NCBI RefSeq assembly: GCF_000143415.4
Contig: NW_003314270.1
Span: forward strand, 2,039,048-2,103,047
Length of the DNA: 64,000 nucleotides
Reading direction: 5' to 3'
Source of the DNA: Selaginella moellendorffii
Lineage: Eukaryota; Plantae; Lycopodiophyta
Within the stretch, counting starts at the first letter, position 1; each line of letters starts with the position of its first letter. The translations under genes were made by a program, and so were the position numbers. The notes under the pieces were generated by a model, which was given only the letters and a program-made list of their open reading frames with translations, was not told the origin of the DNA and made no database searches. Shown here one piece after another: positions 5,401 through 49,368 of the stretch.

Positions 5401-5871
5401 ACTTGGCTTTTACCTTTTAGCTAGTAGGAAGGGTGCAAAATTCCCTCACAACAATAGTGGTTTAAGAGCTTTGGATTCAAGAGAAATATGCCATACAATG
5501 AAGATGAAGGCACTGTAGTGAAAATAAACTAGTTATTTATGCTTAATCCATATTTCTAGGTAACTCAAGTGTTATTGCAATGACAGAAAGATTCACACAC
5601 ATTTACAATGGCAATTTAGTGCAGCTTAGAAGAGCTCTAACCCTTTTTACTATATAGTAAACATTGGCAGATCTATCTAGAGAGATAAAAAAATTGGCAG
5701 CTTGGCTAAAAAATAGATGCAAACTCTATTCTATTACAAATATACTGTGTTCTAAGTAATTGTAATATTATTGTAGTGTTTTTACATTTGATTATGTTCT
5801 TCCAATTGTAGTCATCCTTCTGATAATAAGTAGTTTTCTCATGTCACATGAGAGAAGATAAGGCACGCGTT

Positions 5872-5994
5872 TCTATTCTTGCCCACATCCTTTCCACTAT
5901 TCCCTATATATTTTATAAATACAAACTATATGTGTGTGTGTGTGTGGAATAGTGGCATGTAAGGAATAGTGGCAATGATGAGAGCAAGGATAGA
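5872..5994. mobile_element. MITE-like element with ~32-bp imperfect terminal inverted repeats
   Basis: tctattcttgcccacatcctttccactattcc (5872-5903) versus the reverse complement of ggaatagtggcaatgatgagagcaaggataga (5963-5994), enclosing AT-rich/(TG)n filler. Confidence 0.55.
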
Positions 5995-6159
5995 GACTAT
6001 CTTAAACTTTGCCATGTGGAGGTCAAGTAAAGTTGAAGCATGAGAGTGTGGTGGAGCACCCTTATAGAGCAACAGATGGTGTAACATATATAGTCAAAAC
6101 TATTAATATTTTATTTCTATTTTTATATAAATATATGAAATAAAAATTATTATTATCAA

Positions 6160-11549: not shown

Positions 11550-13716
11550 GTTGAATGAATATTTTTGGTGCTGTCTTTTATTATAATTAGTATTGTAATT
11601 AATATTAATTTAATGTAGATTACTCTTTATATCTGCTGGAAGTAGAATGTAGGCCAAGAATACAACAGGAACTTTTGCTCTCATCCAGGATAACGCTCTG
11701 GTAAGGATCAAGAAGGATCAAGATCAGTTGGCTTTGATGGGGTCAGGAGAAAAATTTTAGACAAGAGTATGGCTTTTGAAAGAGAAAAAATTTAGATCAG
11801 AGTATGGCTTTTGAAAGAGATGGAGTATAACACAAAGATGGATGACACCTCCAATAATAACACACTTTAATAATATATGTTAGTGGTTTAATGAAATCAT
11901 CTTTATTACCATTTCCCATGAGTGGTCATCCTAGGGCAAGTTCCAGATGCAAAGACCACTTTTGAAGGTCAATCTATCTCTCTATAATATGAAGTTACTT
12001 AGATGAATAACAATGAATAGAGCTTGTCTGCAATCAACTTGGAGTGAACTAATCTTTAATATTAACATCATATCAAGCATTTAGTTCAGTCTGAAGAATA
12101 ATGAGTTCGTATTTCTATTTTTTTATACATGTTTTTGAGGGTCTTCTAGAGTACTATGAGACCACAATACAATGCATGTAAATTGATTTCCTTATCATTT
12201 TTGGTCCCTCTAAGGTTACTTTTGCTATATATATATACTCTTTATTTAAAGTTGCTATTTTGGCATTGGTGTCATTTTAAGAATATCCGATTCAATTAGA
12301 TTATGACTCTCCAAAAGGACTTTAGACATGGCAAAGAGGTGGGTTATAATATTTTAGGGTAGACTGTGAAAATGCTTTTATTTTTGAGGAAGAATACAGT
12401 ATTCTTGTTTCATTCATGATCTATGGCCATAGCATAAATTATATTTCTTTCCAATTTTAACCAGCCAACAGCAAAGGCAGGATTGAGGACGAAAGTCCCA
12501 ACCAGCAAAGATCGAGGAAGAAAGCCCATGGTGAGAATTATTTTATCGGATATCTCTTGTGGAACCAAAGAGGGTCTCTGCCAAGGAAGGAGCTTTGTTG
12601 AAAGTAATAAGCAAGAGACATTATCAAACCATATATCAGTCTGGAAGCACCATTACTGGAATTTCAGTGTAGAATGGAAAGGTGTGTGTCCTTGGCTTGA
12701 AGCTGCCAATAGAAGTTTGAGGTAGATCAGTAGATTGGCTTACATCCTTATCCTATTCATTGGCTCCTTTGTTTGCATAATCAAAATGATTGAGATCAAC
12801 AATGTTTGATCCCATATCCATGGTGACGCAGTAGCAGCTATAAATCCATGCAAGGGTGATTTGAGCACCATATTGTAGAGCACCAAGAAATTGACCATAT
12901 GATTATCATGGATTATGTGTTGTCATGGATCTGGGATCAAGCAAATCTCATGCCTTCTTGGAAATTCAGTAGATCATAGTTTCCAGCAAGCTTCTGATGC
13001 TTTGCATTGCTATGCAATAAGGACTTACTTGAAAAAACAAAATGAAGAGAGAACTCTTAAATAACTCTTAACAAAGGCATTGTAAGTGTGAGATAATGAT
13101 TAATATTCTTCACCATTTTAGAAGGGACCCCAACTCTGCTGGAAAATCCAAGTGCCAATAGGTTTTCTATAATGTATTTTGGTTGACAAACTGCATACAA
13201 GGTTAATTTTTGTGGATATAACTAGAATATATTTGGATATTCTGAGGTATTCTACCATTTAACGGTTGTTATTCATTTAGATTAATTTTTTATTTAAAAT
13301 TTATAAACATGTTTATAGTTTATAAACTTTAGACACTTTCTAGTATATTCTAGTTTATTCTACCATCTAATAGATGATATGCAATAAAATTAAACTTGTG
13401 TTTATAAATTATAAACATATCTATAATTATAAACTTTTATTTGATCAATTGGATTAATAAATAGGAATAACACTACTATTAAGCAAACAAAATATCATTT
13501 GTTATATCATTATAATTTATTAGTTGGTGAAAGAAAGCTAACTTTTATTTACATTTCGCTTCATATTATACATGTTAGATAAATATGAAATATGAGATCA
13601 TAAACTAAATATAAGGTGAACCATTATAAGGTGTATTTGGCCTGTTTCAGTCTCTAATGCAAGCATTGATAGCTATTCAGTTATTAGGATAAGAGTAGAT
13701 TATCTTCCATAAAAAT

Positions 13717-13755
<39 letters not shown>

Positions 13756-15230
13756 ATATTGACAATTAGTGCCACTTATTCCTTTAATCTAACGGCTCTT
13801 TTCTATTTCTGACAGTAATCCATGTGGTTGTAAAAATTTTGTCTTTCCTTTTGAAACTATTTTACAATTTTGCAATACTTAAATTTGTGGTACTTGAGGC
13901 AATGAGACAATGGATTGATCATGCCCTTAATAGATGTAGGAGGAAAGATTCTTTCTTGAGCCACACATTAAATATTCCTTATTTAATCAGATATTCCAAT
14001 TTACAAATATCCAATTCAAACTAGATTTTTGACACTCTAAAGCAATGGTGAAGATCATTACAGGTGGCAAAATGTTGGTGCCTCTTGAATTCTAAATTTG
14101 TAGCTTTAGAAATTTTAGTTTTAAGAAGAAAACCAATTTTATTGAGAAATCCTGCATTTCTTTGGAGACCTTGGGTATTGAAATCTGAAGGTAGGTATGA
14201 TGAATTTAGAAACACTTTTCTTCTTCTTTTTTTTACATTAATTTCATGTCGTTTTGTTGTAGATTTTCTATTGTTAAAGAATTGAAAGGCAGAGAATTTT
14301 TGGGTGCTGTATTCTTGCAGTGATTTGGGTGGAATACAATCCTAAAATTTTGTGTTTTATAGCTATTTTACAATTATGGAGCTGATCGATATATCCAGTG
14401 TTTGCTAGAAATTTTCCAGGAGGAGTAGACTGCTGATGCAGCAGCTTTGCACACTGGCACTCTTGAATTATCATCACTGCAGCCACTGATATGAACATGA
14501 CTGGCCACTCAATCAATCAGTGTGGGAGTAGCATTAATGACTACTTACAAATAGGATGGAAAGAGATGGAAGTTGAAACTGGTTTATACTTGAGAGAACT
14601 ACAAGGTCTTAGATTGACAAACCACACTCCTTGAAGTTTTTAATGAGAGCCAACACATCACCAAATGGGGATGGTAAAGTGTTGCTGTATTCTTGGCTGA
14701 ATACTCTTCTGTTGTAGCATCCAGTAATACTTTGTAATACAATGGCAAGTCCATTTCAGTCATAGGTGGCTCTACCCTTTTGGTTGATCTTGAATTAGAA
14801 GATGTTTCACAGCTGTGTGAATAGATGGTTGCTAGTTACAACACAATCAGTTTTGTCCATGTGACCAACTTGTCTTCTAAAGCTGCATGTAAACTAGCTG
14901 TGCTACAAGATGATGATTTGCTGTAATGGACTCTATTCGATTGAAGATGTACAATCTAAAGGTTCGTTGCACGCTTGAGAGCTACAGAGATACCGATAAA
15001 TTGAAGCTTTTTATAGTTGGTCTTGACACTGAAACAATGTGCAAGAAAAAAAAAGTATGTTTTATTTCTTTATTTCTTTCTACTATGTGTGTGTGGTATA
15101 TGTTTCTAAATATAAGCCAAAGTTAGAACTTCCATATATATATATATATATCCTCTATTAATTTATTATACAATATCTGCAATAATTTTCGATTTTGTAT
15201 TATTATTATTTTCTATTTATATCACTTGAA
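11550..15230. other. Second AT-rich tract, probably degenerate repeat/TE or pseudogene debris
   Basis: AT-rich with only short, non-homologous ORFs. Tandem 35-bp unit (agagtatggcttttgaaagaga) at about 11755-11820, ~108-bp degenerate tandem at about 13245-13440, and microsatellites. Confidence 0.45.
13721..13753. repeat. (TC)n microsatellite
   Basis: Uninterrupted tc run. Confidence 0.95.
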
Positions 15231-28142: not shown

Positions 28143-29270
28143 ATGGCGCCACTGCTGCTGCTACTGCCACTGCTACTGCTGATTTCGTCGATCGCGCCGA
28201 GCGCCATGGCAGCGCCGGCGCACACGAGCAATTGGGCGGTGCTGGTATGTACCTCGCGCTACTGGTTCAACTACAGGCATATGGCCAACACCCTCTCGAT
28301 CTACCACACCGTCAAGCGCCTGGGCATCCCGGACGATCACATCCTCCTCATGCTCGCCGACGACATGGCGTGCAACGCCAGGAATTCCCGCCCGGCCCAG
28401 GTCTTCAACAACGAGGATCACAAGCTCAACCTCTACGGCGAGAATGTGGAGGTGGATTACCGCGGCTACGAGGTCACCGTGGACAATTTCCTGCGCGTCC
28501 TCACCGGCCGCCACGATCCGGCAGTCCCGCGATCCAAGCGCCTCCTCAGCGACGAGTCCAGCAACGTCTTGCTCTACATGACCGGCCATGGTGGCGACCA
28601 GTTCATCAAGTTCCAGGACGCGGAGGAGATCCAGAGCCACGACCTGGCCGACGCCATCCAGCAGATGCATCAAAAGGGGCGATACAGGGAGATCTTGTTC
28701 ATGGTGGACACTTGCCAGGCCTCGACGCTCTACTCGCAAGTCTACTCGCCTGGAGTGCTGGCCGCGAGCAGCAGTAAGAAGGGGGAGAACTCCTACTCCC
28801 ACCACCTCGACATGGACGTTGGCGTCTCGGTGATCGATCGCTTCACGTACTACACGCTCCAGTTTCTCGAGGGCGTGAGGACCGACAGCGCCGCCACCCT
28901 CGAGAGCTTGTTCCGGGTCTACGATCCCCGGCTGCTCATGTCCAACGCCAGCTTCAGGGACGACTTGTTCCGGAGGAAGCTGGACGAGGTCCGCGTGACC
29001 GAGTTCTTTGGATCCGTCATGGACGTCAAGCACACCCCGTCGGGATACAGTGGCTTCACTGGCGATCCTACTCGACGAAGTGATCGACGCCGCAGCGAAG
29101 GAGAAGCCAAGCCTCGACGAGAGGAAAGAGAAGCTACTGCTGCTGCTGCTGCTGCTGCTAGTGAGCTCGAGGTCGGTGCTGGAGACGAGGGAGATTGGGT
29201 GCTCGGGGTGAGTTGCTTGCTGATTGGAGTCACCACCGTCTTGTGGCACAAAGCTCTAAGGACAGACTGA
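28143..29270 (+). CDS. GPI8: GPI-anchor transamidase catalytic subunit (peptidase C13), intronless
   Basis: Signal peptide, [23 protein letters not shown], catalytic TGHGG and [15 protein letters not shown]-terminal TM. Confidence 0.96.
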
Positions 29271-29303
29271 GCGTCCCAAAGAGAAGCTTTTCGTTTCGTG
29301 TCC

Positions 29304-30994
29304 TCAAGTTCCAGCAGCGTCCTTCGCAGCTTTCAGCTCCGCCAGGCTCTTTGGCCCGTCAAATTGAGATTCTCTCAAAGTGACGCTGTTCCTGGCAGAG
29401 GTGCTGCTGGGAGCAGCACCGGCAGCGGCGGCGAGCTTGGGCTTCTTGGCGACTTTGTTGTGTCGCCAGTGCTGCTGCTGCATCACTCCCAAGTATCTCG
29501 AGTTCCGGGCGTGGTGACGCTGTTGCTGCTGTTGGTGGTGGTGCTGGAAGTTGTGAAACTGGTGCTGGTGGAGTCTCTGGTTAGCAGCATACTTGAGCCG
29601 GGTCTTCACGCTGGGCCTTCCGAGCCTGCTATGGACGCTGCGACTGCCACCATTCGCCACCCTCCAGCTTTCCAGTCGATGGTGAAGAGCAGGATTGGTT
29701 TCGTCGTAAACTAGCCTGTTGTGAGCACTACTGTTGTCGCTGAGAAGCTTTAAGCGGTTTGCGGCAAAGAGGCTCCTGTGGTTCCCTCTCGGAAACACCA
29801 GCCGGTCCTCGAGCCTCCCTCGGTTTAGTCCCTCCAAGTTCCTGGCCATGAGAAGAGCTTCCAAGTCGGGATCAATCCGCTGCTCCTGGACGAGAGGCTG
29901 CCGCGAGCTGATCATGCAGTCGTAAGGGAGCGATGGCTGGTACGGTGGATCGTAAGGCTTGTACTCGTTGAAGCTGTTCCGTGTGCCAGCGCTGGGGCCG
30001 TTTTGGAAAGCTCCTCGCTCGTAGCGGCAGCCTCCAAAGTCGTACGAAGCAGAGTCGAGGAGACGGTGTTGCTGGCTTTGGATTTGATCAAGCAGCTGCG
30101 AGGAGGAGCCATTTACTGGATCGAGGACGGTGTCGTAGTTATCTCCATCGTCCGAGTAAAAATCCTGCTGGGCTCCGGGATCTACGTCGTCGAAGTCGGG
30201 GGAGCTGCCTCCCATCGGCCACTCGTGGTGGTGCAGCCTGTAGAGTTCTTCGGACTTTCCGTCGCCACTGTCGGATTTCTCCTGCTGCTCTTCGTCCTGT
30301 GTCGGCGAGCTGCTGCTCTCCACCTGGTGCTGCTGCTCGTGTTCTTCCGGAGTTTCAAGCTGGACTTGGTGTGGAGGCTCGCCCGGGCCGCTTCTCTGGC
30401 CGATCGAGAGCTTGGAGCCCCCGTTTTGCGTGACGGTAGAGGCAGCAGGAACTTGAGGCTGGGATGGAGTTTGCTGCTGCTGGGCCAAAGTTTGGACCTG
30501 TTGGGAGCGACGAGCAAAGCCGTGCATGAACGGACACTGGTCTCCTTTTGCGCAGTATCCTTGAGAGTAGAAGTAACAGGGGACTCGAGAATTGGAGCTG
30601 GGATTCTCCTCCTCGGACACGTCCAGCGGCTGCGAGAAATCAAATACCATTATCCTCAAAGAAAGAAAAAGACTCTCTATCAAAGAAAGACTATGAAAAA
30701 TCCTAAGAGGAGAAGGAAGAAGACTCACGGGATGACGAAACGGGCAGTCTGGATTGAGGCAGTTCCCAGAGAGCCAGTACCAACAGTCGCGGGGATTTAA
30801 TCTCGCGACCTCGCTGTGCCTAAACTCGCATTGCATTCCCTGTGGCGCGGAGAGAAAGACGAAAAACACATTTTTTGGTGAATGTTCGTGCCCCGGCATG
30901 CGATCTTGCGGGAGAATTCCACATTTCTCACCTTCTTGCATGTGAGCGGCGACGCGAGGAAGTAAACGCAGTCCGTGTTCTTCTTGTCCTCCAT
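29304..30994 (-). CDS. CCCH zinc-finger protein (ZC3H11A-like plant family)
   Basis: NTDCVYFLASPLTCKKG.QCEFRHS; RDCWYWLSGNCLNPDCPFRHP; PCYFYSQGYCAKGDQCPFMHG; SSPDFD; C-terminal FDGPKSLAELK. Confidence 0.9.
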
Positions 30995-31082
30995 CACGCC
31001 AGATCTGGGCAAAACAAGCCCTAAACCTAACCCTAAATATCAGCAAAGGCAATCCAGGGGCTTTTATTTTCTCCTTGTTTCT

Positions 31083-34141: not shown

Positions 34142-35559
34142 ATGGCGGGGCTCTTCTCGCGGTTTAAGAAGAAGGCGTTCCGGATGGAGATGCTGGTGTG
34201 GTGGACGCTGCTGGGAGTGCTTGTGGGAATCGCGCTGGGAGCTGGGCTTTACAATTCGCATCCCTCTGCTCTAACAGTGGAGCTCCTGGGTATGTATCAT
34301 AAGAGAAAAGATCTCCCCGTCGTTTGTCCTAAAAGCTCGATCTCTTTTCCTTTTTGCTTTCAAGGGTATCCTGGAGAGCTTTTCATCCGAGCTTTACAGG
34401 CCCTGGTTCTGCCATTGATTATGCTCGCATTGATGTCTGGAGTGTTCAGCTTGAGACACACAACCAGTGGGTATGATATTTTTCCTGTGATGTAGCTCGA
34501 TTTCTTTCTTGGCAAAAATGTAGAGTTGGCCGTATCACCAAGTGGTCTCTACTGTATTATCTACTGTCGATGATGCTTGCCGTGGTTTTGGGAATCGTCA
34601 TGGTGTCGGTGATCAAGCCTGGGAGAGACAAGCCATTCGACGACTCGGGTTTCACAAAGTGTGCCACTCGCAATGGAACTTCCCCCACAGAGTGAGAGTG
34701 ATACTTTCATGCTGTTTTCAGTTCTTACTTGAAGTTTTTTTTTATTTCTAGCACACCAAAGGCAGCAGCTGGGACTGTGGATTCCCTGCTCGAGATTGGC
34801 CGCGACTTGCTTCCTACAAACATCGTCGCGGCCGCTGCGAAGCCAAACTATTTGGGAGTCATGACTTTCGCCATTGTCTTCGCTTTCGCCACCAATACAT
34901 TCGGTGAGAAAATCTCTAAACCTGTCAAGGAAAAAAGCTCGTAACTCTCTCCTTTGTGTACCTCCAGGTGAGCGAGCCGAGCCTCTAGTTCATCTCATCG
35001 AGCTCTGCAACACCATCTTGATAAAAATCGTAACTTTCTTGTGTCTTCGATTGATCACAATCTTACATTGCTTTTTTCTTCTCCCGATCAGATCTTTGTA
35101 GTGGTCATGTTCACGCCCGTCGGAGTTGCGTCGCTCATCGCAGGCACCATTCTCAAGGCATGCAACGCCGTCCATCTTCTCAAATCTCTCGGCTTTTACA
35201 TGGCGACGGTGCTGGGCGGATTCTTCATCCATTCCACGCTGGTGCTGCCACTCACAGTCTTCCTCCTGTCGAGGCAAAATCCCCTCAAAGTTTTCAAGTA
35301 AGCAGCCCGGTTCTTTGAGCTCTTGAAGATCACAAGCTGGTATAAAGCGATTTGCTGCGTATCTACCAGATCATTTTTGCCAGCGCTGTGCATGGGACTG
35401 GGAACTTCCTCCAGCGCCGCCACAATGCCAGTGACAATGCAATGCGGCGGAGAACACGGCTGCGACCAGAGCATCGTCCAGTTTGTGATTCCTCTAGGAA
35501 CCAACATTAACCGCGACGGTGCCGCGCTCTACGAGGCAGTCTCAGCAATTTTTATCTGC

Positions 35560-35607
<48 letters not shown>

Positions 35608-36101
35608 CTCTTCGTCCTCCATCTCTCTCTCACTCACTTTTTTCTCTTCGTCCTCCATCCAGGCTCATGGAATCCATCTACCTGTAAGCAGCCTCTTCGT
35701 CATCGCCATCACTGCCACTCTCGCCGCTGTTGGCTCCGCGTCCATTCCCAGCTCCGCTCTGGTGACCATGATCACTGTTTTACAGGCAAGCCAGCTTTAA
35801 GCAAGACTATGCGAAGATTTTTTTCTCAATCTTTTCTTCTCCAGGCTGTGAATCTTCCCCAGTTTATTGGTGACGTTTCGGTCCTTTTTGCCGTGGACTG
35901 GCTGCTGGGGATGTTTCGCACGTCCGTTAACATCTGGGGTGATGCCTGTGCCTGCGTCGTCGTCGATACCTGGAACAAGCGATTCTCCAGGAAGCAACGA
36001 CCTCTCGAATTTCCCGACCAGGTAGCCATTCTTTCTTCTTCTTTCTCTCTCTCTCTCTCTTTGATGAGTTGTTTGTGATTCCCAAGGTGGCGCCAGTTTG
36101 A
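34142..36101 (+). CDS. SLC1/DAACS (dicarboxylate/amino acid:cation symporter, GltPh/EAAT-like) transporter
   Basis: GYPGELFIRALQALVLPL, HP1 GTSSSAATMP, TM7 PLGTNINRDGAALYE, HP2 ATLAAVGSASIPS and TM8 AVDWLLGMFRTSVNIWGD. Ends VAPV*. Includes a GC-AG intron at 35786-35844. Confidence 0.93.
35564..35603. repeat. (CT)n microsatellite in a DAACS intron
   Basis: Long ct run immediately after the donor GT. Confidence 0.9.
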
Positions 36102-36172: not shown

Positions 36173-39100
36173 TCACTGCTTCTTTCTTCCTCCTTTCTTC
36201 CCGGACTTTTTCTTCTTCTTGTTTGATTTCTTAGGCGCGGGCTTAGTAGCGGACGAGCAAGGCTTTGCTGGCTCACTGGAGATAGTTTCTTTGCGCTGGA
36301 GAGCATCACCGAGCACGTCTTTAAGGCAATGGTTGAATTTGGATCTGCCATAACCTAGTTTCTCTGTTGCTGGATTTGTGACAGATAGAAGTAGCCAATC
36401 CGAGTCCTGCTTCTGGTGGTCGGCATGCCTGAGAGTTTGTAAAGTTATAGATCATCCATACAAGCAAAGCAAACACTTCACTCACCTAGGATCCATAAGC
36501 TCCAACAAAGCCTCGCATTCGCACTTGAAGTCGTTCATCTTCTCCACGAGGTCGTCTCGATCGGCCTTGAGTTGCCCATCCTGACCGGCAAAGGTTCGGC
36601 CTTTCAGAATCTCAATGGCGGAAGCCATGTCCAGCACGAAACTCACCAAGTCCGCCTGCCAGGAGAGTGTTACAAAGAACCGGAGGAAAAAAGAGAAAGG
36701 AAAGTATGCAGACCTTTAGAGGACACACTTCGGAGATGAATGACGAAACGTAGCCGTCGTCTTTACAAGCCATAGTGGTAAACGCGTTTTTGGCTTCCCG
36801 GACATACTCGTCATCCTGGACCAAGTTCTCTCTGGCAACTTGCAGCTTTTTCAGCAGCCTCCAGACCACGAAAAAGCCGAGCTTCGAATCGCCAACTTTC
36901 AGGTACCATGGAGACAATGCTTCTTCTTTTGCGGGAGCCGTCATCTCTGGCTCCGGACACTCGAATGTCAGCTCGACCTCGGAAGGTTTCAGCTCCGTTG
37001 TGTCATCAACTTCCTCCTCCTCAGCATCCACAGTCTGCAGCATCATATCATCCGGTTGCTGCAGTGACGCCAGGCTGAACTTCCACGGCTCCGGCTCCAC
37101 GTTGACATAAGTCTGGAACCGAGACTTAAATCCATGCCTGAATTTGTCTCTCCGCCTCAGAAGCAGAAACTGATCGCCGCATTCAACCATGAACCGGCAG
37201 AAGAGTAGCCGGAAGTGATTGTAGTTTGCACCTGTCTCGAAGAGGCACTGCAGCCCCTGCCTCAAGCTCGGAAGAAGATGGTCCAGCGCAGAAGACTGCC
37301 GGGTCACCAAGCTCCTCAGATCTCTGAATATGTGGCTGTTCACTGCCTGGTTCTCAAACTCCATGAAAATGGTTAAGAGCACTCGAATAATCCGAAAGAC
37401 TACCTCTGACTTTGGGATATCGAGCAGCCACTTGTCCAGGCGGTATCCGAGTAGCAGAGAACTGCAAATCTTCTGAATGACTTCCAGAGAGTTTGTCCCA
37501 ACACTCTTGCAAACTTTCTCCACGGAGCAGCCCATCCTCAACATCCGCGTGTACAGAATTTCCTGCGTAGACCCCGTCATAAACTCCATAGCCAGGCTTT
37601 CCGGGAGCGTTGCCTCTACGATGTGTGATAAGCACGCAATGCTAGAAACAAGTATTCGCTCCAGCATGTAGATGAACATCGACGGAGTGATATAATGCTG
37701 GAAGCCTTCCATGCTAAAGATGTCGTGCAGCCCTTGAGCACACTGGCTCATCGGCATCGCAAAGTGGTAGCAGTACTCGTTGGCAATAAAATCCTGCCCG
37801 GGACCATTCCTCAAATAAGGCTCCAGAATCTGTAGCATAACTGTTTCTTCGACCGAATCACTCGCTGCTGTAATGTCTCTGGCAAGCGCGCCCAGGTGAG
37901 GAGTAACTTTGGGATGGTCCCGTAAGCTAACGGGAGTATTCCCTCGGCGTACGAATAAACACCGGAAAACCTCCATCCTGAGACTTCGGAGTCTTCTTTC
38001 GTGAGTTTCGGACTTCCCCAAGCTACTGACCACGTCCATAATCTTCAACACTGACAGGCAGCTCTCGGCTCCACCAGCATTGCCTGCGTGGCTTTCCAGC
38101 ACTTCACAGAAGATTGCGCTCGTCGACTCTAGCTGACCCCGCCAAAAATCTGTTGCTAGAGACAGAAACTTTTCCGTTTTCAGCTGTGCCTTTCCACTGC
38201 CGACGGTCCAGTCTCCACCCCGTTTCAGCCAGTCAACCATGCTGTCCTCCACTATGCACAGCCCGGGAAGATGGTGCCGAGTAACGCCCATAAATTCCAA
38301 GCAAGAATCCAGAAGTGCGTCGCCTTGCGGAATAATTTTCTCGATCTTTGCCAGTGCCTTCAGCAGCGAGCTTATCTTCTGGAACCAAGTGTTCCAAACA
38401 GCGACCACAAACTGCAGAGTGTTGGTCATGTCACTAGCTGTTCTCAACGGCCTGTCCAAAACCTGTAGAGTAAGAAGCCCGAGCGAAGTCGAACCTTTAG
38501 CCAACTCTAGACCTTTCTCCAAGAGCTGACGCAGCACTATGATGTTTATAGTCGGGTCGTCTTTCGCCAGCTTCCAGTTCTCGAAAACATCTGACAGCGA
38601 GAGGTCGTCGTCATCTCTTAGGACTCGAAGCTGGATTTCTGCTCGAGGATCCCCTTTTGCCATTCTGTGAGCCTCAGTGACGAGCTTTTCATCTTCCAAA
38701 GGCCGCAAAGGCCACCCCAGGTTGTTGTTCGCCCATAGAAGTTTCAGCTGCATGTGTTTGATGATTTTTCTAGCTCCTTCGGCTCGATGTCCAGCTAGTT
38801 CTAGGAACTTTGCAGCGGCTATAAGATCTCCTTTCGCTTCGGCTACCTGAGAAGCTTCTTCGTAGTTCATGTAGAAGAACTCCACTTGCATAAGCTGCTC
38901 CAGATAGTCACGCCTCTTCAAAAAGTCCCGCTTCATGGAAATGCCCGGAAACGCGTGAACAAATTTCATCATCCTGTCAACGTCCTTCTTTCTGTGATAG
39001 TGCTCCGCCGAGGTCTTCAAGAGATTCACCACGTACTTATTGCTGAGGAATGAAGCATCTTGCTGTTCTCGGTCCCGGATAAAGTTCAGTCCCTTCTCAA

Positions 39101-42100
39101 ACAGCTTTCCAGCCAGGCATGCGGATAAGCAACTCTGAAAATCTTCTACCATGGAATATGCTTCTGCTGCTTCATCATAAATCTTTGCTTGTTCAAAACA
39201 TTGGGCAGCATTTTCCCAGCGCGGCGGATTGCACTTGTCCCTGTACAACACACCTGGAAATGACAGAAACGTTAGTGATTCAAAATCGCTACGTATCACG
39301 ATTACATGAATTAATTACCAGCTTGCTTAAAGTTTTTGATCTCCGTCAAACATCTTGCCGCAGCTTCGAACTTCGCAATTCTCTCATAAAGGTTCACTGC
39401 GTCTTGTAGCTGCTGAGTCGCTATGGTGGGATTCCAGACGAGATTCTTCTCCCCATTTTGCTGGTGCAGAGCAGCTTGTGCCCACTGAGCTCTATACGAA
39501 TCATGAGCTCGTTGGTAGCACAAGACAGCCATATCATACTGGCGGTCGTTGAACATCTGTCGATAAGAACACGTAAGTTTATGAAGAGACTTGTGGAGCA
39601 TTGGAAACTAACCTGGCGTCCTCGTTGTAGCCACTCTTCCCGGGTGCTGATTCTATGGAAAGAAGAAACGAGGGATTCGTCCAGACTTCTCGACTGAACC
39701 AAGTCTTTCGTAATCCAGTAGTCTAGCATGGGCTGCTGGAAAATAAAGTCCTCGTCATATATCCAAAGACGCTGCTTGGACCTTGTAATAGCCACATATA
39801 GCTGCTTCAGTTCGTTACACAGGATGTTGTGAAGCCTTTTCTCGAACTTGGGATATCCCTGACAGCAGCAGTTCACAAGACTTGTCTCGTCGAGATAGGT
39901 GTACAGAGTTCTCCACTTAGAGCCGAAGTTCGACAGCGCAAAAAAGTTGTACAGTAGAACATCCTGAAGAGACTGTTATTTAAACCGCTAAACTTCTATC
40001 AATTGACTTACCTGGAACTCGAGACCTTTGCATTCTTCTACAGTAAGCACCAAGCTTCGCGTTCCTAGTCGCTTTAAAAGTTTCTGCTTGGATTCACCAT
40101 CTCGCACTAGAATCACCTGCTCGGCTCCAAAGTCGGACTCCTGTCCAAAACCTCCACTGTGATCAAATAGGCAGGTGATGAGGTTGTAATTCTCATCGGA
40201 CTTCACAACAACGGGCTTCTCGCCACATATCAAACTCCGCTCCGGTTCCAACTTGTCAACTGTTTCCGGAAAGAAGAACAACAGCAACTGCATAATGCTG
40301 TCCGCGAGCTCGACAACCCCTTGGTGAGTTCTAAAATTCTGCGTCAGCTGATGGATATTACATAGTGCCTGCTTCCGCAACTTCCCATCTTTCGTGATCT
40401 GCCTCCTGTCGTCAATTTCCAAAAACTCCTTGTAAAACAAACTCCTGATATCCTCGAAACGAAAGTTTACGCCTTTAGCGATTGTTTGTGCCGTGTCTCC
40501 AGCAAAAACAAATCCTTCTGCAACGTTGTCAGAAACGAACTTGAGAAGACTGATCTGAGCCAGAGTGAGGTCTTGGACCTCGTCGACGTATATAAACTGA
40601 AGCTTCGGTCCTAAAGGTTCCCCACCCTCGATCTGTCGATATAGATATCTGACGTGGTCCAATATATCATACTCGTGTCGCTGTGACTTTAGCTTCTCGT
40701 ATTGTAGAAAGAGCTCATAAATATTTTCTCGTTGGCTCTGGTCCAAAGTATAAGAAGACATATAAACGTAGTCATTTCGAGATAGCCGTCCTTTATGGCT
40801 TCGTAGAGATTCAGGCCTTCCTTTAATCGATGACATGATCTCGGTGAAGACGACTGAGGCATCGAACTTTTTGGTGAAGCTAGAGTTCAAATGCGGCCAA
40901 TAGCTTGCGGCAAAGCAATCAAAATCCACCTCTTTTCTGGGCTGAATCCGTTGAGATGTCTTCGGAGTTTCATAAGAGATATCAATGTCGTCATTTGTAT
41001 CCAAGCGATCGCTGTCGTCGCAATCTTCAACTCTAATAAAAGTTCCTTGCGCTGTCTCCATGTCCCTCCTGGCGATAAAAGGTCTCGGAACGCTGCCATC
41101 GAGCATGGTTAAAAACTTTCGATACGTGATGACGAGAGGAAATGCTTGCGGGGATATGTCGACGAAACTGTCAGGTATGTCGCTGAACAACTTTTCTTCT
41201 GCTTCCTCGTCCAGCAGTAAGCCTTTTCTCTCATACATGTCATCTTTGTTGACAGCGTTGCTTCGCTGAAGAGATCTATGATTTCAAAAGTTAAATCAAA
41301 CAAAAAGGCACTGAACTCTTACCTGCGTGTCCTTTGAAGGTGAAGCTTAATTGCCGCGCATAGTTTTGAGCTGACAGTTATCAGAGCTTGACGTACTACA
41401 GTTTGAGCCGGAGATTCACCTTCAGCGAGCCCATGAGATAGACGAAACTGTTGCTCTCGGTTAAGCAGCTTCATGGTTATAATTGTTGTCTTTCCTGTCC
41501 CCGACCTTCCGACGACGAAGGAACTCCAGGGGAACTTAACAACTTGAGATTCTTGATCTGTTACCTCGAATGGAGGATCGATTTGGCTACCGTCGGTGGC
41601 TGTTAAGAGCTGTCTAGCAATACCTGTTGATAGAGAATAAAACTTCATCAACAGTAAGCTTTCTGACACGCTTGAGTTCTCGCCAGTCGTGGTCTCCTCG
41701 TTCGCCTCAGAGCTTGCAATCTCTTTGAAGGACTTATGCCGAGCTATTTCAGCTCCAGAGCTCCATCTAGCAGGCACGGCCAGCTTCCTACAAAAAGATA
41801 CTGTGAGTCCCTTCAATATTGAGAAGTTGGGACATATGTACCCGTCCGTAAGGCGTTCGCTCGATCTTCTTAAATAAGCACCCGAGTATGTAGCACACAG
41901 GTTCTCAAGACGGCTGACAATCCTAGGAAGGCCATCAAGCTTTAGAAAATCCCAGAACTTTAGGACTTGAACTGTGCAATCGGCGTCCAAGTCAACCGTC
42001 CAAACTAGATACATTTCCATCGTAAGATGAAACTGAACGTAGTTTCGCTTCGTGGGAACGGGGGCCGTAAACGCGTGTCTCGGACGACGTCCATTGGCAA

Positions 42101-45100
42101 GGTTGAGAATGGCATTTAGCACATGCAACTTTGTCGATCCCGACGAGATGGACGTGAAACTAACTTTGAACTCTTTGCTGAAAAACACCTGCAACTAGCT
42201 CTTTGTTAGCATTACAGGACTCTAAACAGCTTGAGTCTTACCTTCCAAACGTTATTGCTAAAAAAATCTGACCGGGGATCCACGAGAGACTCCAGCTGGT
42301 GAATTTCCGCCATAGCTCTTTGAATAGTTCTCTTTACGGTAGAATCCTGTGAAGCTTCTCTATAACATTTCCTATGCCGCGCATCGTTGAGAAGCTGTCT
42401 CCAAACACCGTCACTGGATTCCAAAGTGTTGGCGCTACCGACAATACAAAGAACGTGCCTACAACAAAACTTTTCAGCTGTAAGCTGCTCGATAGGCAAG
42501 TCGAAAGCTACCTTGCGCGAGTTATTGCAACGTTCAATCGTCGATGATCTTCGAGAAAACCCAGGTAACCACCAACATTTGACCGAACGGTGGACAAGAT
42601 AATAACATCTTTTTCGCGTCCTTGAAATCCATCGACAGAACGACAATTGATGCTTAAACTTCCATGGTCCCAGGACTTAAGCCGATCGTTGATGGCCTTC
42701 ACCTGAGCAGCGTATGGAGATATTATGCCTACTTCTAATTTTTCGCCTGGAAACAAAAGTCAGTTTCAGGAGAATAAAAAGACTCCGCACCTGATTGGTG
42801 AAGCATCTTGAGGAGGTGCATCACAACAAGTACTTCCACAGCATTGCTCTTGCTGTGCTTTTCGTCTTTCGTTTCAACACCGTGCACGTTTAAAAATGTG
42901 TAAGGACCAAAGAGCTGCGATTGTGATAACTGGCCATAGAAGTCATCCACAACATTTGGCCCGTCGCAGATTGCACCTTCATAGAACTGGAAATTTGGAA
43001 ACTGACTGATAGAAGGATGCATACGGTACTGAACGTTGAGCATTATACTAGGATGTCCGAGGAGCTGCAGCCTCTCAAAAAGACTTCTGCCATAGCTGTA
43101 GTCCTGAGCAATCTGGGAAACCACGAGAAGCGAAATTTCAGATGAAACCAGGAGGCTATTGACCAAACAAAGTTACCTTGCTTATAACAGTCGCTGGTAA
43201 TTGTTTGTGATCCCCAACTAATACCAGCTGCTTCACGTTTTGTAGACCCATCACAATTGCTGTCTCTGCTTCCACAAGCTGGCCCGCTTCATCGATAACC
43301 GCTGTATAAAAATGTCGAGAGGTATTCTGCACAATTCTCATGCCTGCAGAGGAGACCGTGCAGCAGACTACAGACGCGTGCCGCAGAAGTTCTTCACCAG
43401 TAGGAATTTTACCAGGCGGGTACGTCACAAAATCCATGTTTGTCTTCAACAGGTTCAGAAGAGCTGCTGCGGCCCCTGAAGTAGAACTGACGTAGTTCAG
43501 AACTTCAGAGTCTTCGCGAAATCGTCCAAAGGCTGCATTGATCTCGGTGACGTGGTGTCTGGCTCCAAGGATATCAGTAGACTTGAGAAAGGTGGACGGC
43601 AGGTCGTTGCACACTAAGTCAATGCTACTCAGCATCTGATCCCCAAGAAACGTCATTCTCTCCCTGGAGAAGTCCAGGAAGCTCTCGGCAGGCTCGTCGG
43701 GCTTCTTATCCTGCTTATACTGCCTATAGCGTTCTTCTGCATTCTCCAGAAAGTCCACGACAGAAAGAACTTTCTGTTGCCACCCGCAAGCAGTAGCGAG
43801 GACAGTCGCTAATCGTTCTTCTCTGCTCTGAAGGAAAACAGCGTCAAGGATCTCGTTGTCATCCACTTGAAGATTTTCTTTGTTGCCCACCAACACGACG
43901 TCACGAGGACATACGGTCCTTGTACACCCGATAAAAGAGGAGGGCTGCTTTGTTATCGACGTAAAAAGCCTCACCACAACCTCAGTTATGGCGGCATTTG
44001 TCGGAGCAGACATAAGTATCCGCTTGCTGGAGCCGGCAAGCACAGAGATCAGAGCTATGAGCATCGATGTCTTTCCTGTTCCGGGCGGTCCTTGGATCAG
44101 TCTCACATAAGGCTTCTGTTCCCTCTTCAGAGCGATAACAGTCCTCGAGACAGCTTCCATTTGAGAATCGTTGAGCTTAAACCACCTTGCGCAACTAATC
44201 TCGGAGCTTGTCATACCTTCGACGTCATCTATCTCCGGTTCACCCTGCAAAACAAAAACGCGTCTTAACTAGATATGTAAACGAAGCATGAAGTTTCTTA
44301 CCGAGTTTGCTTGGAGAACTTCTTGAAATATAGGATATTGACCTGCTAGAGCCAGTGAAGGACGTTTCAGAGCCTCCCAAACTCGCATTCCAGTGGCGAG
44401 GGAGCTCAAGTAGACAGCATACCACGGTCGATTGGTTTCAAGGAAGGGGTCGTACTCGGAACTGTAGATAGGAGCGTATACGTCGACTTTGAGCTCGTCA
44501 CTGTCCATGTCGTCGCCAGCGATAATAAGAGCAAGAGTATAAAACTCGCCACTATCTCGCAGAATCGTCAGGCAGTCTGGCTCTGCTGTTGTCAGGAGAA
44601 CCAAATCCTTCGGCTTTAGTATGTCTTTCGAAATTTGCATCTTAAACCTTCTGATCTTGTCATCGCCATCCCGACCACGGACTTCCTTGCCCATCTCGAC
44701 AAGAACGCAAGGCAACTCGTTGATCATCTCAAGACTTTGCTGCAAGGCGGCGCGGGTCTCTTCAAGTAGAAGAGGTCGGAATACGCTCAGATAGTTTTTC
44801 AAATCCGGAAACTCCAAGGGAATTTTGTCAACCTGGCGAGAGCAAGACAGTCACTCGAAGCCAATCACCAAGAGCAAAAAGAAGAAAACCAACCTGATTG
44901 ACGAGCAAGCTTTCGTTGTTTATGTTGTCCAAAGACCATGCCAGAACTTGGCGTGAAAGAGTTTGCTCCTCCGCGGCCATTCCTGGATTGCGGAAAGAAA
45001 CCTCTCTCCCAGCGAACTTTGGCTCCAGCTTCTTGAGAAACTCCTTGGAGGCCTCGACAACCTCCACGGGGATGCGCTTCCCAAGCTCCCTAAACACCCA

Positions 45101-45448
45101 AAGCCTCCGGTTGTCCAAGGTGTACCACGCATTCTCGTGGTAGAACACGCGAATGGGTGGAACTTCTTCCACCCCGACCGAGCCATCTCTCAGCTTGGCC
45201 AGCAGCCCTTCCAGGCTGCCCTCCGCCGCGACCTGCGCAAAGCTCTGCGAAGATCCTTCCTTCTCAGCGCCTTTCCTTAGCAAAGCCACACTCTTTTCAA
45301 ACACCGGCCGCTGTGAGAACCTGATGGATTTCGGATCCATCCACTCGATATGCTGCGATTTCCCTGGCGCCGACTCGCAGGAGCTCATCCCTCTGCCGAT
45401 AATCGCATCCGGCGCCTCCTGATCACTAGAATATTCACCTTGCTCCAT
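36173..45448 (-). CDS. Giant TRANK1/LBA1-type dual helicase: ParB-like + Sen1/UPF1-like SF1B helicase + RelE-like + UvrD-like SF1A helicase + TPR
   Basis: Helicase 1: [54 protein letters not shown]. Helicase 2: [48 protein letters not shown]-like AAQCFEQA repeats and a Lys-rich C-terminal tail. ORF blocks join through short GT-AG introns. Confidence 0.9.
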
Positions 45449-45718
45449 CGCCTCTAAGTACGATCGTCCCAGAACCGCAAGAACCCAGGTGCGATCGGCC
45501 TAGAACTGGAAGAGGATCGATCGGCACACCTGCATTTACCGATTTCGTAGAGGCATCGCGATCGATCACGCAGAGCCCTAGAATATGAGCGCCGCGAGCG
45601 GCAAAGCCGTAAGAATTTAAAACGAGCACCAAAATTTTTACATTTCCTATCAACGTCCATTCATATAGGCCGTCCCGACCTATACGAGCGTGAAACCCCG
45701 GCCACCGTAAGATTCTCT

Positions 45719-46385: not shown

Positions 46386-49368
46386 TCACGAGGCCTCGAG
46401 AGAGGCCAAGTTGGACATAAAGGTTGATCCAACTGTCGATCCGGCTTTGAAGAACACGGCTGGAAGTCCAAGCGGTGCATCGATCCAGGCACTCGAGGAT
46501 TGCTCCGCAGAGCCGTAGTTCCTGTTCGTCCAGACGTGCACCCACACGTCTCCCGCTGGAAAATAAGCACGGACCTTTCGTTTGCCTCTGTTGAGCACTG
46601 GAACGACGAGAAGCTCCGAGCCAACTAGAAATTGCTCGTAAGTGATTCTTTGCACGAACTCGTCCTGTGGATAGTGAAGGAAGAGGTGCCTCACGACGGG
46701 CATACCTCGACTTGCCGCTTCCTAGATTGCAAAAAAAATCATTCCTTCCAAGCGTAAGCGCGAATCTATGCAAGGAGTTATACGCACCTTGACAAGTTCC
46801 TTGCGGTAAAACTTCCACGCTTTGAAAATCCTTGCGCACCTAGCAAAGTGTTGCAAAGTTCGCGCATTCGTGTAAAACTGAGAGTTCGCTCCAGGATCGT
46901 TTCCCTGGAAAAGGAAAGTTTTGCAAACCATTTCTAAGAACCTCTTTCTCGTACCTCGTGCGTTCTGAAAATCACAGAGAAGGCGTTGAGCTCCATCCAG
47001 CGCATGAGAAGCTCCTCACTTCGCACGTACTTTAGAAATGGAAAATTCACCGTTGTGTAGCCGCCAATATCACTGTGATTCAGAGAGTATCCGGAGATGC
47101 CACTGCTCAGCAGTCCAACAACAGCGCTTTTTATGCCATCGTTCCTCTGCCAGCTGACCATTTGATCTCCTTCCCAGAACAGGGTCGACCACTTCGGACT
47201 TCTCATAAACCCCGCTCGCATGAAAAACACAAGTTTGTCGATGTCACCGTTTTGTAACTTGTGCTCTTGCTCCCATTCTTCGACGACCTCCCTGTTGAGC
47301 TGAGCCCACAGCTCGGGAAATCGATTGTGAAGGAGCGCTGGATTCTCGTCTGTTGTACACAGGCTTGTCAGGAACCATCCAGTAAAACATCCACAAAACT
47401 ACCTGAGTGAATGACCGAGTCGAAAGGTAATGCTTCGCCAAAGTCCGCCATCCACCCCGAAACTCCAGTACTGATCATGTCTCTCAGTATCTCTTTCAGC
47501 CAGCAACGAGCTTTGGGATTTGTAAGATCAATGACCCCTGCGTCAAAACTCGTGTTCGTAATCATGTAGACGCCTCCACCAGGCTTACGCACCAAGAAAC
47601 TCTCAGCTAAAGCTTCTTGCAATAGATTTCTTCGTTTCGCTTCCTTGCTCTCAACCTTTACATTCAAGGTAAGACATTGGCATCGTAAAGGAAACTCTGA
47701 AAAGAGACTTACACAAGCGAGGAGAGGATTGCAGTACGTCATTGTTCGAATGCCCTGGGATTTGAGCTCTTGCACAAGCTCCCCCCATCCTTGGTAATGA
47801 TCCGTGTCTGCTTCCCAGTTCCACCAAAGTTGCCATCCTATGCTTGTTTTCCTTTGGCCAACCCAGTCCTGTGCACAAAGAAAACGAAATCTTTAACAGA
47901 AGTCGGAGGTGAAAAAAAAAATGGAGAAAAGAAATACGAACTTGCAACCAGAAGGCAGCTATAGGAATGTCGTGCTTCTTAAGTTCAGCATGTATTTTCT
48001 TCACAGCGTTCGTTCCACCTTGCATACCAATGACAGCCCCTTGATGAATCCAGTCCGGAAGCTCTCGCATTCTTCCAATGCTTTCAGTATAGCGCATAAG
48101 CAGCTCTGCGGGTGTCTGTCCATGTAAGATCCGGCCTTCCATCGTTCCCGAATGTACCTGAAAATCACTCTCATCTTAAATTCAGAAAAGGAGAGACAAA
48201 AACAGAACTTACTTGTATTTGAACTCGATCGTGACGACGCAGATCAAAGACGGAGTACTCGTAGTTTTCAAGGAACAAACACCGCATATCCGAGGTCATG
48301 TAATATGGCGATGGTGCATAAGTTGTGTGCCAGCTTCCTCCAGATCTAGAAAGAGAAATTCCAGAAACAAGTTGAAACTTTTGAAGCATACCTGTAAGAT
48401 AGAATGTTTGCTGCAGCGGTAATAGGCTGGTCACCTCTTCCGACGCCTTGCTCCTGAACGAGGATCGGCACTCTCCGTCCTTTCAGATCTAAGCAAGAGA
48501 ACTGCTCGCCAAATCCAAAGAATCGTTCGTTTCTGTGAGAGATGTACGTCAGCTGGACCCTGTTAAAATCCGGAACTTCGTCAATATTGGCTTGCTCAAC
48601 CGGTCGAACTCGTAGCGAGCCATAGCTTCTCCGTCTAAAAATTGATCGTTCCGTCCAAATCCTCTCTAGCACGTCAAAATCACTTTTAAGTTCGGCTTGG
48701 AGCTCGTGATAATAGTTCTCCACTTGTTTTGGTGGCGCGATCCAGAACGGCTTATCAAGCTTGATCGTAAAACCAAGGTGGTGAGGCCTCTTCTCTGTGA
48801 AGCAAAGCGTGTAGCAGACAGCAACACTGTTGGAGCAGTCTTTCCTACGAAAGAAAGGCCGCGGAGAATTTAACGCTGTTTCTGCCGAGAACAAAGTCCC
48901 AGTGATCACCACTGACGAGCCCCCACTCACGGACAACGGGGTCCCATCTCCATCTTTTTGGTTTGACAACGAAACGTGATCATCCGCTAGCTGACTTTGA
49001 GCGCTTGAGCCCGCCAAAGAGAGGATCTTGTCAACACTTTGGTGCTTACAAATTAGCTTGACCTCGTCCTGGATCCCAAACGATCCCCGAAACTCCTCCA
49101 CCGTTTCCACTCCCAGAGCCGCGGTGACGAAAGAAAACCCAGGAGCTGTGGACCAAAGGCTTCTACCTGGCTCGCTGCGATGCTCCACGCTTAAAAATCC
49201 CCCCTTGTCCGGGTTCCAGCAAACCAGGAATCCATCGCCCACCGGAAGCACCACCACCTCCCCAAGAGCCTCGCGATCGAAGAACAAATTCCCCTGGACG
49301 AAACCCATCGATTTGGGCTGCCGCGGGAAGGGAGAATTCACCATTCTCCTCCTCTCTTGCTGATCCAT
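46386..49368 (-). CDS. Glycoside hydrolase family 31, YihQ/sulfoquinovosidase-like
   Basis: GFGEQFSCLDLKGRRVPILVQEQGVGRG, WLQDWVGQR, nucleophile GWMADFGEALP, WEGDQ, HSDIGGYT, RTHEGN and LVAP-like LLVVPV. Start approximate. Confidence 0.92.

Follow-up and report, generated by a model that had tools for sequence, protein, structure and literature searches.

Introduction

In RecBCD, two superfamily 1 (SF1) helicases of opposite polarity, RecB (SF1A) and RecD (SF1B), co-translocate in the same direction on two antiparallel strands. Here we describe a gene in a 64,000-nucleotide (nt) stretch of DNA from Selaginella moellendorffii (contig NW_003314270.1; the whole stretch is called the window) that encodes two SF1 motors in one chain. 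The gene is transcribed. Its predicted product of 2,852 amino acids (aa) would carry an N-terminal domain of the Tox-ParBL1 type, an Upf1/Sen1-like SF1B helicase, a domain with a RelE/ParE toxin fold and a divergent UvrD-like SF1A helicase. By analogy, the protein may be compared with RecBCD and AddAB, where SF1A and SF1B motors and a nuclease-type module form one machine. In contrast to these enzymes, the motors of the window protein lie in one polypeptide, are of the Upf1/Sen1 and the divergent UvrD type, and are not joined by a RecB-family nuclease.

RelE-fold domains linked to helicases or sensors have been described in bacteria. In the bacterial CoCoNuT systems, the UPF1-like SF1 helicase CnuH carries an RTL domain, which is RelE-like, was found by structure only and is of uncertain activity (Bell et al. 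2024, PMC11090510). The window protein resembles CnuH at the level of the fold, as a RelE-fold domain is fused to an Upf1-like helicase. In contrast, the RTL domain of CnuH precedes the helicase, a second SF1A helicase is absent and the system is a multi-gene operon. Cami1 (CARF-RelE), which was among the structural matches of our inter-helicase domain, is comparable in that a RelE-fold domain is joined to a sensor domain; for CnuH and Cami1, RNA-directed defence is predicted or proven. With the RelE/ParE toxins themselves the window domain shares the predicted fold and topology over nearly the whole toxin length, and weak sequence similarity to YafQ in β1-α1-α2. The toxins differ in having catalytic sets of His, Arg, Tyr and Glu, whereas the window domain conserves W, G, D, Q and W, is part of a 2,852-aa protein and, unlike the toxins, has two extra helices after β4.

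The Tox-ParBL1 family was defined by Zhang, de Souza, Anantharaman, Iyer and Aravind (2012, PMC3482391) with a predicted ParB/Srx-like fold. Its traits are a conserved N-terminal [ST] and a [NT][RT][RT] motif, mostly N-R-R, that is equivalent to ParB DGHHR. The link to ParB was made by HHpred (93% to 1vz0), plants were already among the eukaryotic hosts, and the bacterial members are C-terminal warheads that follow RHS, FilH repeats or HINT (PMC3482391). The window domain shares the [ST] and the N-R-R and is likened to the family by these motifs and the published description. In contrast to the C-terminal bacterial members, it is N-terminal, fused to a helicase and without secretion or immunity context. 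Another ParB-type effector of polymorphic toxins is ToxB, a ParB-CTPase-fold ATPase toxin of CdiA, the toxicity of which needs the GxxR arginine (Kaljevic et al. 2026, bioRxiv 10.64898/2026.05.05.722872). ToxB is comparable as an effector working via nucleoside triphosphate (NTP) binding and hydrolysis. It has the motif G-N-H-R and is of the classical PF02195 type, whereas the window domain has D-N-R-R, gives no PF02195 match at threshold and falls into the ParBL1 branch. A classical ParB toxin of the ToxB type was therefore rejected, based on the two motifs.

Among plant proteins, the window protein is collinear with the TRANK1-like/UvrD-like family from the DUF6469 module to the C-terminus and adds a 185-aa N-terminal ParBL1 exon. 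Pfam scans of the exons detected no ankyrin repeats, and the link to TRANK1 is given by the database names of the plant homologues. A public annotation of the gene exists, its family is known though not studied, and the occurrence of ParBL1 in plants was recorded in 2012. New are the RelE/ParE-fold domain, identified by structure, as a universal part of this family of plant dual helicases, and the distribution among lineages of the ParBL1-helicase fusion. Our literature search found no mention of a RelE/ParE domain in the plant family or in TRANK1-like proteins.

A transcribed gene with two helicases

The coding region extends over 36173-45448 of the window and, like every feature of the gene given below, lies on the minus strand. 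From 45448 to 36173 this strand contains a string of long open reading frames (ORFs) with short gaps between them. Removal of 13 canonical GT-AG introns joins 14 exons into an open frame of 8,559 nt, or 2,852 codons, without internal stop. The ATG is at 45448 and the stop codon at 36173-36175. These ends match exactly the coordinates given in an earlier reading made from the letters of the DNA without database searches (the sequence-only reading). That reading had proposed one spliced gene with two apparently intact SF1 helicases of different subfamilies and a small domain ahead of each. All 13 introns are very short, at 44-65 nt. The gene is present in a single copy within the window.

RNA data from two transcript-contig runs and two raw RNA-seq runs were aligned to 39520-45519. 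Nine RNA joints with GT/GC..AG ends on the minus strand were found in this region. Seven of them are productive introns and were seen directly in spliced contigs of two runs (44245-44301, 42747-42790, 42459-42511, 41788-41841, 41276-41322, 39964-40011 and 39557-39612). The GT-AG intron 44833-44893, which connects exon 1 to exon 2, is supported indirectly by a contig overhang that passes 44890 and continues 11 nt into exon 2. Introns 43113-43176, 42189-42241, 39254-39318, 36656-36713 and 36429-36485 were placed by frame, consensus and the short size typical of the gene. Joining exons 1 and 2 restores the motif VN.V..IPL.FP and joining exons 6 and 7 restores WKV.FS; both motifs are conserved in homologues. 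The RNA thus confirmed the spliced coding sequence at seven introns directly and at an eighth indirectly.

Alternative splicing was also observed. A 42-nt intron (42470-42511) uses an acceptor 11 nt upstream of the productive one. In run X2 this form alone was found at the joint (contig depth 11.6), and the productive form was found in run X1 (depth 3.4). In translation the alternative acceptor shifts the frame and leads to a predicted 948-aa product with ParBL1 and Sen1 only. A GC-AG joint of 67 nt (40157-40223) inside the UvrD-like exon was detected in one contig of run X1. The frame is broken by this splice, with a stop at codon 1611, and it is probably an unproductive or rare isoform. As a separate observation, the predicted 948-aa product resembles the separate ParBL1+Sen1 proteins of 1,155-1,219 aa from Calypogeia and Closterium.

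The first helicase is encoded by exons 3-6 (42458-44244), where an Upf1/Sen1-like SF1B core (AAA_11 and AAA_12) was assigned by Pfam, PDB and motif comparison. Pfam matches were strong over exons 3-5 (AAA_11, E 4e-42; AAA_12, E 9e-23 and 3e-30). The closest solved SF1B relatives in the PDB were Sen1, Upf1/NAM7, IGHMBP2, DNA2, ZNFX1 and Aquarius, with E values of 1e-54 to 1e-61 for Sen1 and Upf1. The motif coordinates are 44068-44091 for Walker A, 43279-43293 for motif II and 42458-42543 for motif VI. Judged from its sequence, this is an Upf1/Sen1-like SF1B helicase with complete motifs I-VI. Exon 2 upstream of it (aa 186-362; 44302-44832) encodes what appears to be the N-terminal module of plant Sen1-like helicases (DUF6469, PF20073). 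With E 2e-5 and 25 bits, the match in the window gene stays below the cut-off of 27 bits; in the liverwort homologue P0004 it reaches E 1.9e-10.

The second helicase is encoded by exons 8-10 (39613-41787) and was assigned by Pfam and motifs. Pfam detected UvrD-helicase with 26.5 bits (cut-off 23) and UvrD_C with 20.9 bits, below its cut-off of 25.6. UvrD-like motifs I-VI are legible by eye (Walker A, 41487-41510; II, 40570-40587; III, 40480-40506; V, 40015-40044; VI, 39763-39798). We call this helicase divergent because a phmmer search of the UvrD-like part against the PDB gave no solved sequence relative. From its motifs it is predicted to be a UvrD-like SF1A helicase in which all signature motifs are intact. 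Two intact SF1 helicases of different subfamilies were therefore found in the proposed layout.

Among database proteins, the best relative was P0001 (SELMODRAFT_438696, a hypothetical S. moellendorffii protein of 2,806 aa), which is 97.5% identical to our gene model. The architecture is the same, and PF00580, PF13361 and PF13538 are listed among its precomputed domains. Scattered substitutions affect ~2.4% of residues, and P0001 is probably the other haplotype or a near-identical copy of the window gene. It is missing 45 residues that include UvrD motif V (region 39964-40146). The RNA contigs back a 48-nt intron (39964-40011) at this place. Therefore the public model is probably wrong at 39964-40146, presumably through prediction of a longer intron.

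Two or three adjacent genes (ParBL1, Sen1-like and UvrD-like) might have been misread as one. In the runs aligned, no single RNA read or record covers both helicases or the whole locus, and introns 43113-43176 and 42189-42241 are without a listed RNA joint, so that the joint of exons 6 and 7 is based on the open frame and motif conservation. These gaps count against one gene, and the alternative acceptor with its Sen1-only product and the shorter ParBL1+Sen1 proteins of Calypogeia and Closterium would fit separate genes. Against this stand the 2,852 codons, which are open only after removal of the 13 canonical introns, the RNA support for the joint of exons 1 and 2, the conserved motifs restored across both joints, and the same collinear architecture annotated in hundreds of plants. 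We rejected the artefact on these grounds and regard it as extremely improbable. The locus is one transcribed S. moellendorffii gene with two motors in one chain; the frame, the RNA joints, the conserved motifs and the annotated P0001 all support the single spliced gene that had been proposed.

The domain between the helicases

A domain with a predicted RelE/ParE fold is located between the two helicases (aa 973-1075; 41892-42253). It is encoded by the end of exon 6 and by exon 7, on both sides of intron 42189-42241, and was recognized by AlphaFold 2 (AF2) and structure searches. The domain is present and conserved in all 121 family members examined. An alignment of 106 copies (A3) served as input for AF2. 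The resulting model had a predicted local distance difference test (pLDDT) value of 87 and a predicted template modelling (pTM) score of 0.84, with the order β1-α1-α2-β2-β3-β4-α3-α4. When exon 7 was submitted as a single sequence, pLDDT was 38. The strands (E) and helices (H) of the model are E18-20, H22-29, H34-48, E68-73, E76-84, E90-99 and H101-116, which corresponds to the RelE/ParE topology of about 85-95 residues.

The model was compared with known structures. Nearly all of the top 50 Foldseek matches in the PDB were RelE-superfamily toxins (YafQ, RelE, YoeB, HigB2, ParE2 and HP0892/0894), with template modelling (TM) scores by target of up to 0.72. VIA-align superimposed 84 of 90 residues on Vibrio YafQ with Z 8.7 and a root mean square deviation (rmsd) of 2.4. 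In a Foldseek-independent search of 48,161 PDB chains, the top 22 all belonged to the RelE/ParE superfamily (Z 5.6-8.5), and unrelated folds reached Z ≤ 5.2. The best superpositions had Z 8.5-8.7 and rmsd 2.4-2.5, and the top matches included the ribosome-dependent RNases YafQ, HP0892/0894, HigB and YoeB. An ESM Atlas shape search returned the plant clusters of the family itself, followed by RelE/ParE/YafQ/Gp49 clusters (TM 0.69-0.79).

Sequence comparison gave fainter signals. The sole match of the family profile among PDB sequences was the YafQ toxin, over β1-α1-α2 (E 0.6), and a language-model look-up gave weak pointers to ParE, YhaV and ParE_like. Pfam, PHROGs and NCBIfam contained no family that matched the inter-helicase domain at threshold. 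Recurrent weak matches of the alignment to PsbU and Methyltrn_RNA_4 were taken as noise because the structure searches were unanimous for RelE/ParE. Based on Foldseek, VIA-align, the ranking of 48,161 chains, the Atlas search and the YafQ profile match, the modelled RelE/ParE toxin fold is well supported. The RelE/ParE-like character that had been suggested for this small domain was thus recovered by AF2, Foldseek and the independent searches. Invariant in the family are W975, G1009, D1042, Q1050 and W1055, and nearly invariant are K976, R1011, D1056 and R1069. No antitoxin gene adjoins: the domain lies inside a eukaryotic protein, the gene of which has unrelated neighbours.

The N-terminal domain

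Exon 1 encodes a domain of the Tox-ParBL1 type with a predicted ParB/Srx-like fold (aa 30-185; 44894-45361), assigned by its motifs and relatives. The conserved Ser/Thr is S45 in IRFSQ (45311-45325), and the D-N-R-R motif is D112, N113, R114 and R115 in LDNRRL (45101-45118). An exhaustive search with exon 1 yielded 316 proteins at E ≤ 1e-3, most of which are small or carry the domain at the C-terminus of a longer protein. In an alignment of 138 ParBL1 sequences (A2), D-N-R-R-L is nearly invariant and [ST]-Q is conserved near the start. At position 45, which is S in the window protein, S was found in 64 and T in 57 of ~129 aligned relatives. Pfam scans of the longer matches revealed PT-HINT, RHS_repeat, RHS, Hint_2, eCIS_core and dockerin, with AAA_11 in five. 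WW, ubiquitin and Egalitarian winged-helix families were also seen among these longer matches.

A degenerate DNA pattern for the core motif retrieved 41 bacterial loci, and 38 ORFs carry the motif. In most of these ORFs it lies within the last 60-160 residues. Many of them are giant, with 1,300-2,300 aa, and the limits of the 8-kb locus often truncate them. The ORFs scanned with Pfam contained RHS, SpvB, or Fil_haemagg_2 together with DUF637; the bacterial relatives lie at the C-terminal end of RHS, PT-HINT and filamentous-haemagglutinin/CdiA-like proteins. Motifs and context therefore support membership of the N-terminal domain in Tox-ParBL1, as judged by comparison of sequences. In the chromosome of Streptomyces sp. 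NBC_01013 we observed two separate 238-aa ORFs with the ParBL1 core (L033:3432-4145 and L039:1116-1829), which may be orphan toxin cassettes. Other eukaryotic ParBL1 sequences are P0018 (dinoflagellate Yihiella), P0036 (the bug Nezara viridula), and P0017, P0104 (euglenid Rhabdomonas). Their contexts differ: one domain lies behind an N-terminal module that is repeated five times, another protein shows six matched stretches, and a third has two copies in tandem.

For the fold itself, the computed signals are weak, though concordant, and at most suggestive of ParB. ParB_N alone among Pfam families was matched repeatedly (in 5 of 138 members, with a best E of 0.015, a weak match), and NCBIfam Noc and ParB models were matched weakly at E 0.05-0.13. 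Among named Atlas clusters, ParB_N and sulfiredoxin were the best for two family members, at weak scores of 0.75-0.78. No Pfam, PHROGs or NCBIfam family matched the ParBL1 domain at threshold. In a single-sequence alignment with hhalign, D-N-R-R was placed on the D-G-S-R-R box of ParB, without statistical weight. P1-type ParB was a poor reference for hhalign, being of low diversity and having an N-domain not labelled PF02195. Of the ParB/Srx-like small domain that had been proposed, the family assignment therefore stands, with Tox-ParBL1 motifs and a bacterial toxin context, and the fold is a prediction at which the weak ParB_N and Noc signals hint.

A land-plant family

The wider family was collected with aa 940-1640 of P0001, as a region search restricted to aa 950-1110 matched just the protein itself. 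The wider query gave 726 plant proteins at E<=1e-3 with ~40% identity, and the best 120 of the 726 are about 1,500-4,300 aa long. Identity over aa 940-1640 is ~38-44% to proteins of mosses, conifers, monocots and dicots. Database names are 'UvrD-like helicase ATP-binding domain-containing protein' or 'TPR and ankyrin repeat-containing protein 1'. Domains were surveyed in 121 full-length members. The family is land-plant-wide with proteins of ~2,700-2,900 aa, and the window gene is its lycophyte member. Its invariant core consists of the DUF6469 module, the Upf1/Sen1-like SF1B helicase, the RelE/ParE-fold domain, the divergent UvrD-like SF1A helicase and a long helical C-terminus. Calypogeia P0151 (2,620 aa, full length) aligns with the window protein into the C-terminal region.

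Fusions of ParBL1 to the helicase were found in Selaginella, in the liverwort Calypogeia fissa (P0151 and the shorter ParBL1+Sen1 proteins), in the moss Ceratodon purpureus (P0157) and in helicase proteins of the charophyte Closterium. The S and N-R-R motifs are intact in all four of these streptophyte lineages. Within the survey, ParBL1 occurs in the Selaginella, Ceratodon and Calypogeia proteins only, and seed-plant members have just 25-50 aa ahead of the DUF6469 module. Because 3 of 121 carry ParBL1 and the seed-plant N-termini are this short, we conclude from the sequences that ParBL1 is present in early-diverging streptophytes and absent in seed plants, and does not behave as a swappable effector cassette.

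Double-length gene models of seed plants (P0154, P0155, P0159 and P0156) contain two RelE-fold domains each. Nearby copies were found in Cryptomeria (SUGI_06841xx-06845xx, one contig), Persea (MRB53_022693/022696) and Hordeum (LOC123427746/49). As several models are double-length and neighbouring paralogues occur in many species, the family tends toward local tandem arrays. Neighbouring paralogues were also seen in Castilleja and Bauhinia.

These family data bear on the function that the sequence-only reading had suggested, a dedicated innate-immune toxin-helicase. Here the C-terminal repeats would sense foreign nucleic acid and license the motors, and a RelE-like RNase and a ParB-like toxin would stop translation or kill the cell, following an abortive-infection logic. 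Variable N-terminal cassettes, which would speak for such a role, were absent from the survey, where the sole alternative state is the same ParBL1 in non-seed lineages. Nearby copies or double-length fused models, frequent in seed plants, fit it, as do the intact ParBL1 motifs, the origin of both small domains in prokaryotic conflict repertoires and the like logic of the bacterial defence proteins CnuH and Cami1. In contrast to fast-evolving immune receptors, family members keep collinearity with ~40% identity throughout the land plants, and this conservation from the lycophyte to angiosperms is equally compatible with a housekeeping function. Furthermore, the family does not conserve the canonical catalytic residues of RelE, the presumed TPR sensor is based on sub-threshold matches, and no immunity- or antitoxin-type gene is among the neighbours (transporter, GH31 fragment, CCCH protein and C13 peptidase). 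The immune function thus stays a hypothesis, and we consider a dedicated toxin-helicase of this kind unlikely.

Possible function of the protein

The overall best explanation, to which we give about an even chance, is a transcribed member of a dual-helicase family whose product would act as a bipolar nucleic-acid translocase in surveillance. Its parts are held with different strength. We are highly confident of the architecture as described. The proposed mechanism as a whole, a bipolar translocase with toxin-derived modules, is drawn by analogy and is tentative. In this mechanism, the two SF1 motors of opposite polarity would form a bipolar translocase on duplex or structured nucleic acid. Kinship with Upf1/Sen1 and the RelE-type fold would favour RNA or RNA:DNA hybrids as the substrate. 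The RelE-fold domain between the motors would hold, and possibly cut, the emerging strand. ParBL1, with S45 and N-R-R intact, might serve as an NTP-binding or phosphotransfer effector or switch, and the C-terminal helical region as a scaffold or sensor. The most likely biological role would be nucleic-acid surveillance from domesticated toxin-derived domains, either in quality control or in defence.

Several results argue against such a translocase with active modules. Catalytic residues are K52, K54, R61, R81 and Y87 in RelE, E46, R65, H83 and Y84 in YoeB, and H50, H63, D67 and H87 in YafQ. None of these sets is matched by the conserved residues of our domain, and no His or Tyr is conserved in the family alignment. 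The YafQ catalytic His aligns to a variable column; as this alignment is weak, the active site might be a different one. The RelE-fold domain may therefore be non-catalytic, or ParE-like rather than RelE-like. For ParBL1, profiles searched against the PDB gave no ParB and instead chance-level matches to a solute-binding protein, GlnR and phage proteins, and hhalign of the ParBL1 alignment against P1-type ParB, alone and with 66 relatives, gave a probability of 0.2%. UvrD-like and ParB-like modules are usually linked to DNA, so that the substrate may be DNA as well as RNA. Expression was low in the raw RNA-seq runs (2 and 12 reads), which also speaks against a role in defence. Finally, our literature search found no paper on the plant family, and none on the activity, substrate or phenotype of any member.

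Some of the same data would fit a housekeeping enzyme of DNA or chromatin maintenance, for instance one that processes ends in the manner of RecBCD or removes R-loops. Its RelE/ParE-fold and ParBL1 domains would then have no catalytic activity and serve as adaptors that bind protein or DNA. Folds of the ParE type bind gyrase, those of the ParB type DNA or NTP, and in Z the ParE toxins came within ~1 unit of the RelE-type RNases. Nevertheless, the ribosome-dependent RNases YafQ, HP0892/0894, HigB and YoeB gave the best structural matches. Sen1, DNA2 and IGHMBP2 are among the closest solved helicases, which together with the DNA-linked UvrD-like and ParB-like modules is in line with maintenance. 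Conservation in land plants, with ParBL1 lost in seed plants and the rest kept, would fit a core function with a dispensable accessory; in contrast, the intact S and N-R-R of ParBL1 in all four streptophyte lineages argue for retained activity, and clusters of several copies in seed plants are unusual for a repair enzyme. Taken together, we regard a maintenance enzyme with dead adaptors as rather improbable.

The surveillance translocase favoured here may also be stated in a stronger form. The protein would then be an ancient streptophyte single-chain RecBCD-like bipolar helicase with a live RelE-fold RNase and a ParB-like NTPase warhead. As a eukaryotic counterpart of CnuH and Cami1 it would detect nucleic acid that is foreign or aberrant and respond by halting translation or killing the cell. 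In seed plants, the RelE module would have been retained and ParBL1 lost. We judge this form to be very unlikely.

The results provide a widespread and often multi-copy land-plant family of nearly 3,000 residues with a testable anatomy. In early-diverging lineages a further domain is present, and the bacterial relatives of this domain are warheads of contact-dependent and RHS toxins. Activity of either small domain would make the protein a rare example of toxin chemistry from prokaryotes coupled to a eukaryotic helicase with two motors, and would bear on RNA and DNA monitoring in plants and on the bacterial origins of eukaryotic surveillance and immune machinery. If both are inactive, it would be a clear case of toxin folds domesticated as binding modules. 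Either way, K976, D1042, Q1050 and W1055 as well as S45, R114 and R115 are targets for mutagenesis.

C-terminal region and gene neighbourhood

Following the second helicase, aa 1786-1900 (39147-39556) may form a few TPR/SNAP-like helical repeats. The matches to SNAP (E 0.019) and to TPR_1/TPR_2 (E 0.02-0.1) are all under the Pfam cut-offs, and some family members carry a precomputed PF14938. TPR-like repeats had been proposed at this position; their place after the helicases was found again, as weak sub-threshold matches. The remaining C-terminal region (aa 1901-2852; 36173-39146) has a lysine-rich tail at its end and is collinear with the C-termini of the plant homologues. Pfam detected no family in these C-terminal ~950 residues.

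A sodium:dicarboxylate symporter gene (SDF, E 1.6e-33) is convergent with the helicase gene (35323-36078, plus strand); ~95 nt separate the end of its last long ORF from the helicase stop codon. Other neighbours (28143-31052 and 47368-47775) are a C13 (legumain-type) peptidase ORF, a CCCH zinc-finger protein and a GH31 glycosyl-hydrolase fragment, without evident link to the helicases. At 1-6000 and 12001-14000 the window has a G+C content of 0.29-0.36, compared with ~0.47-0.50 elsewhere in it.

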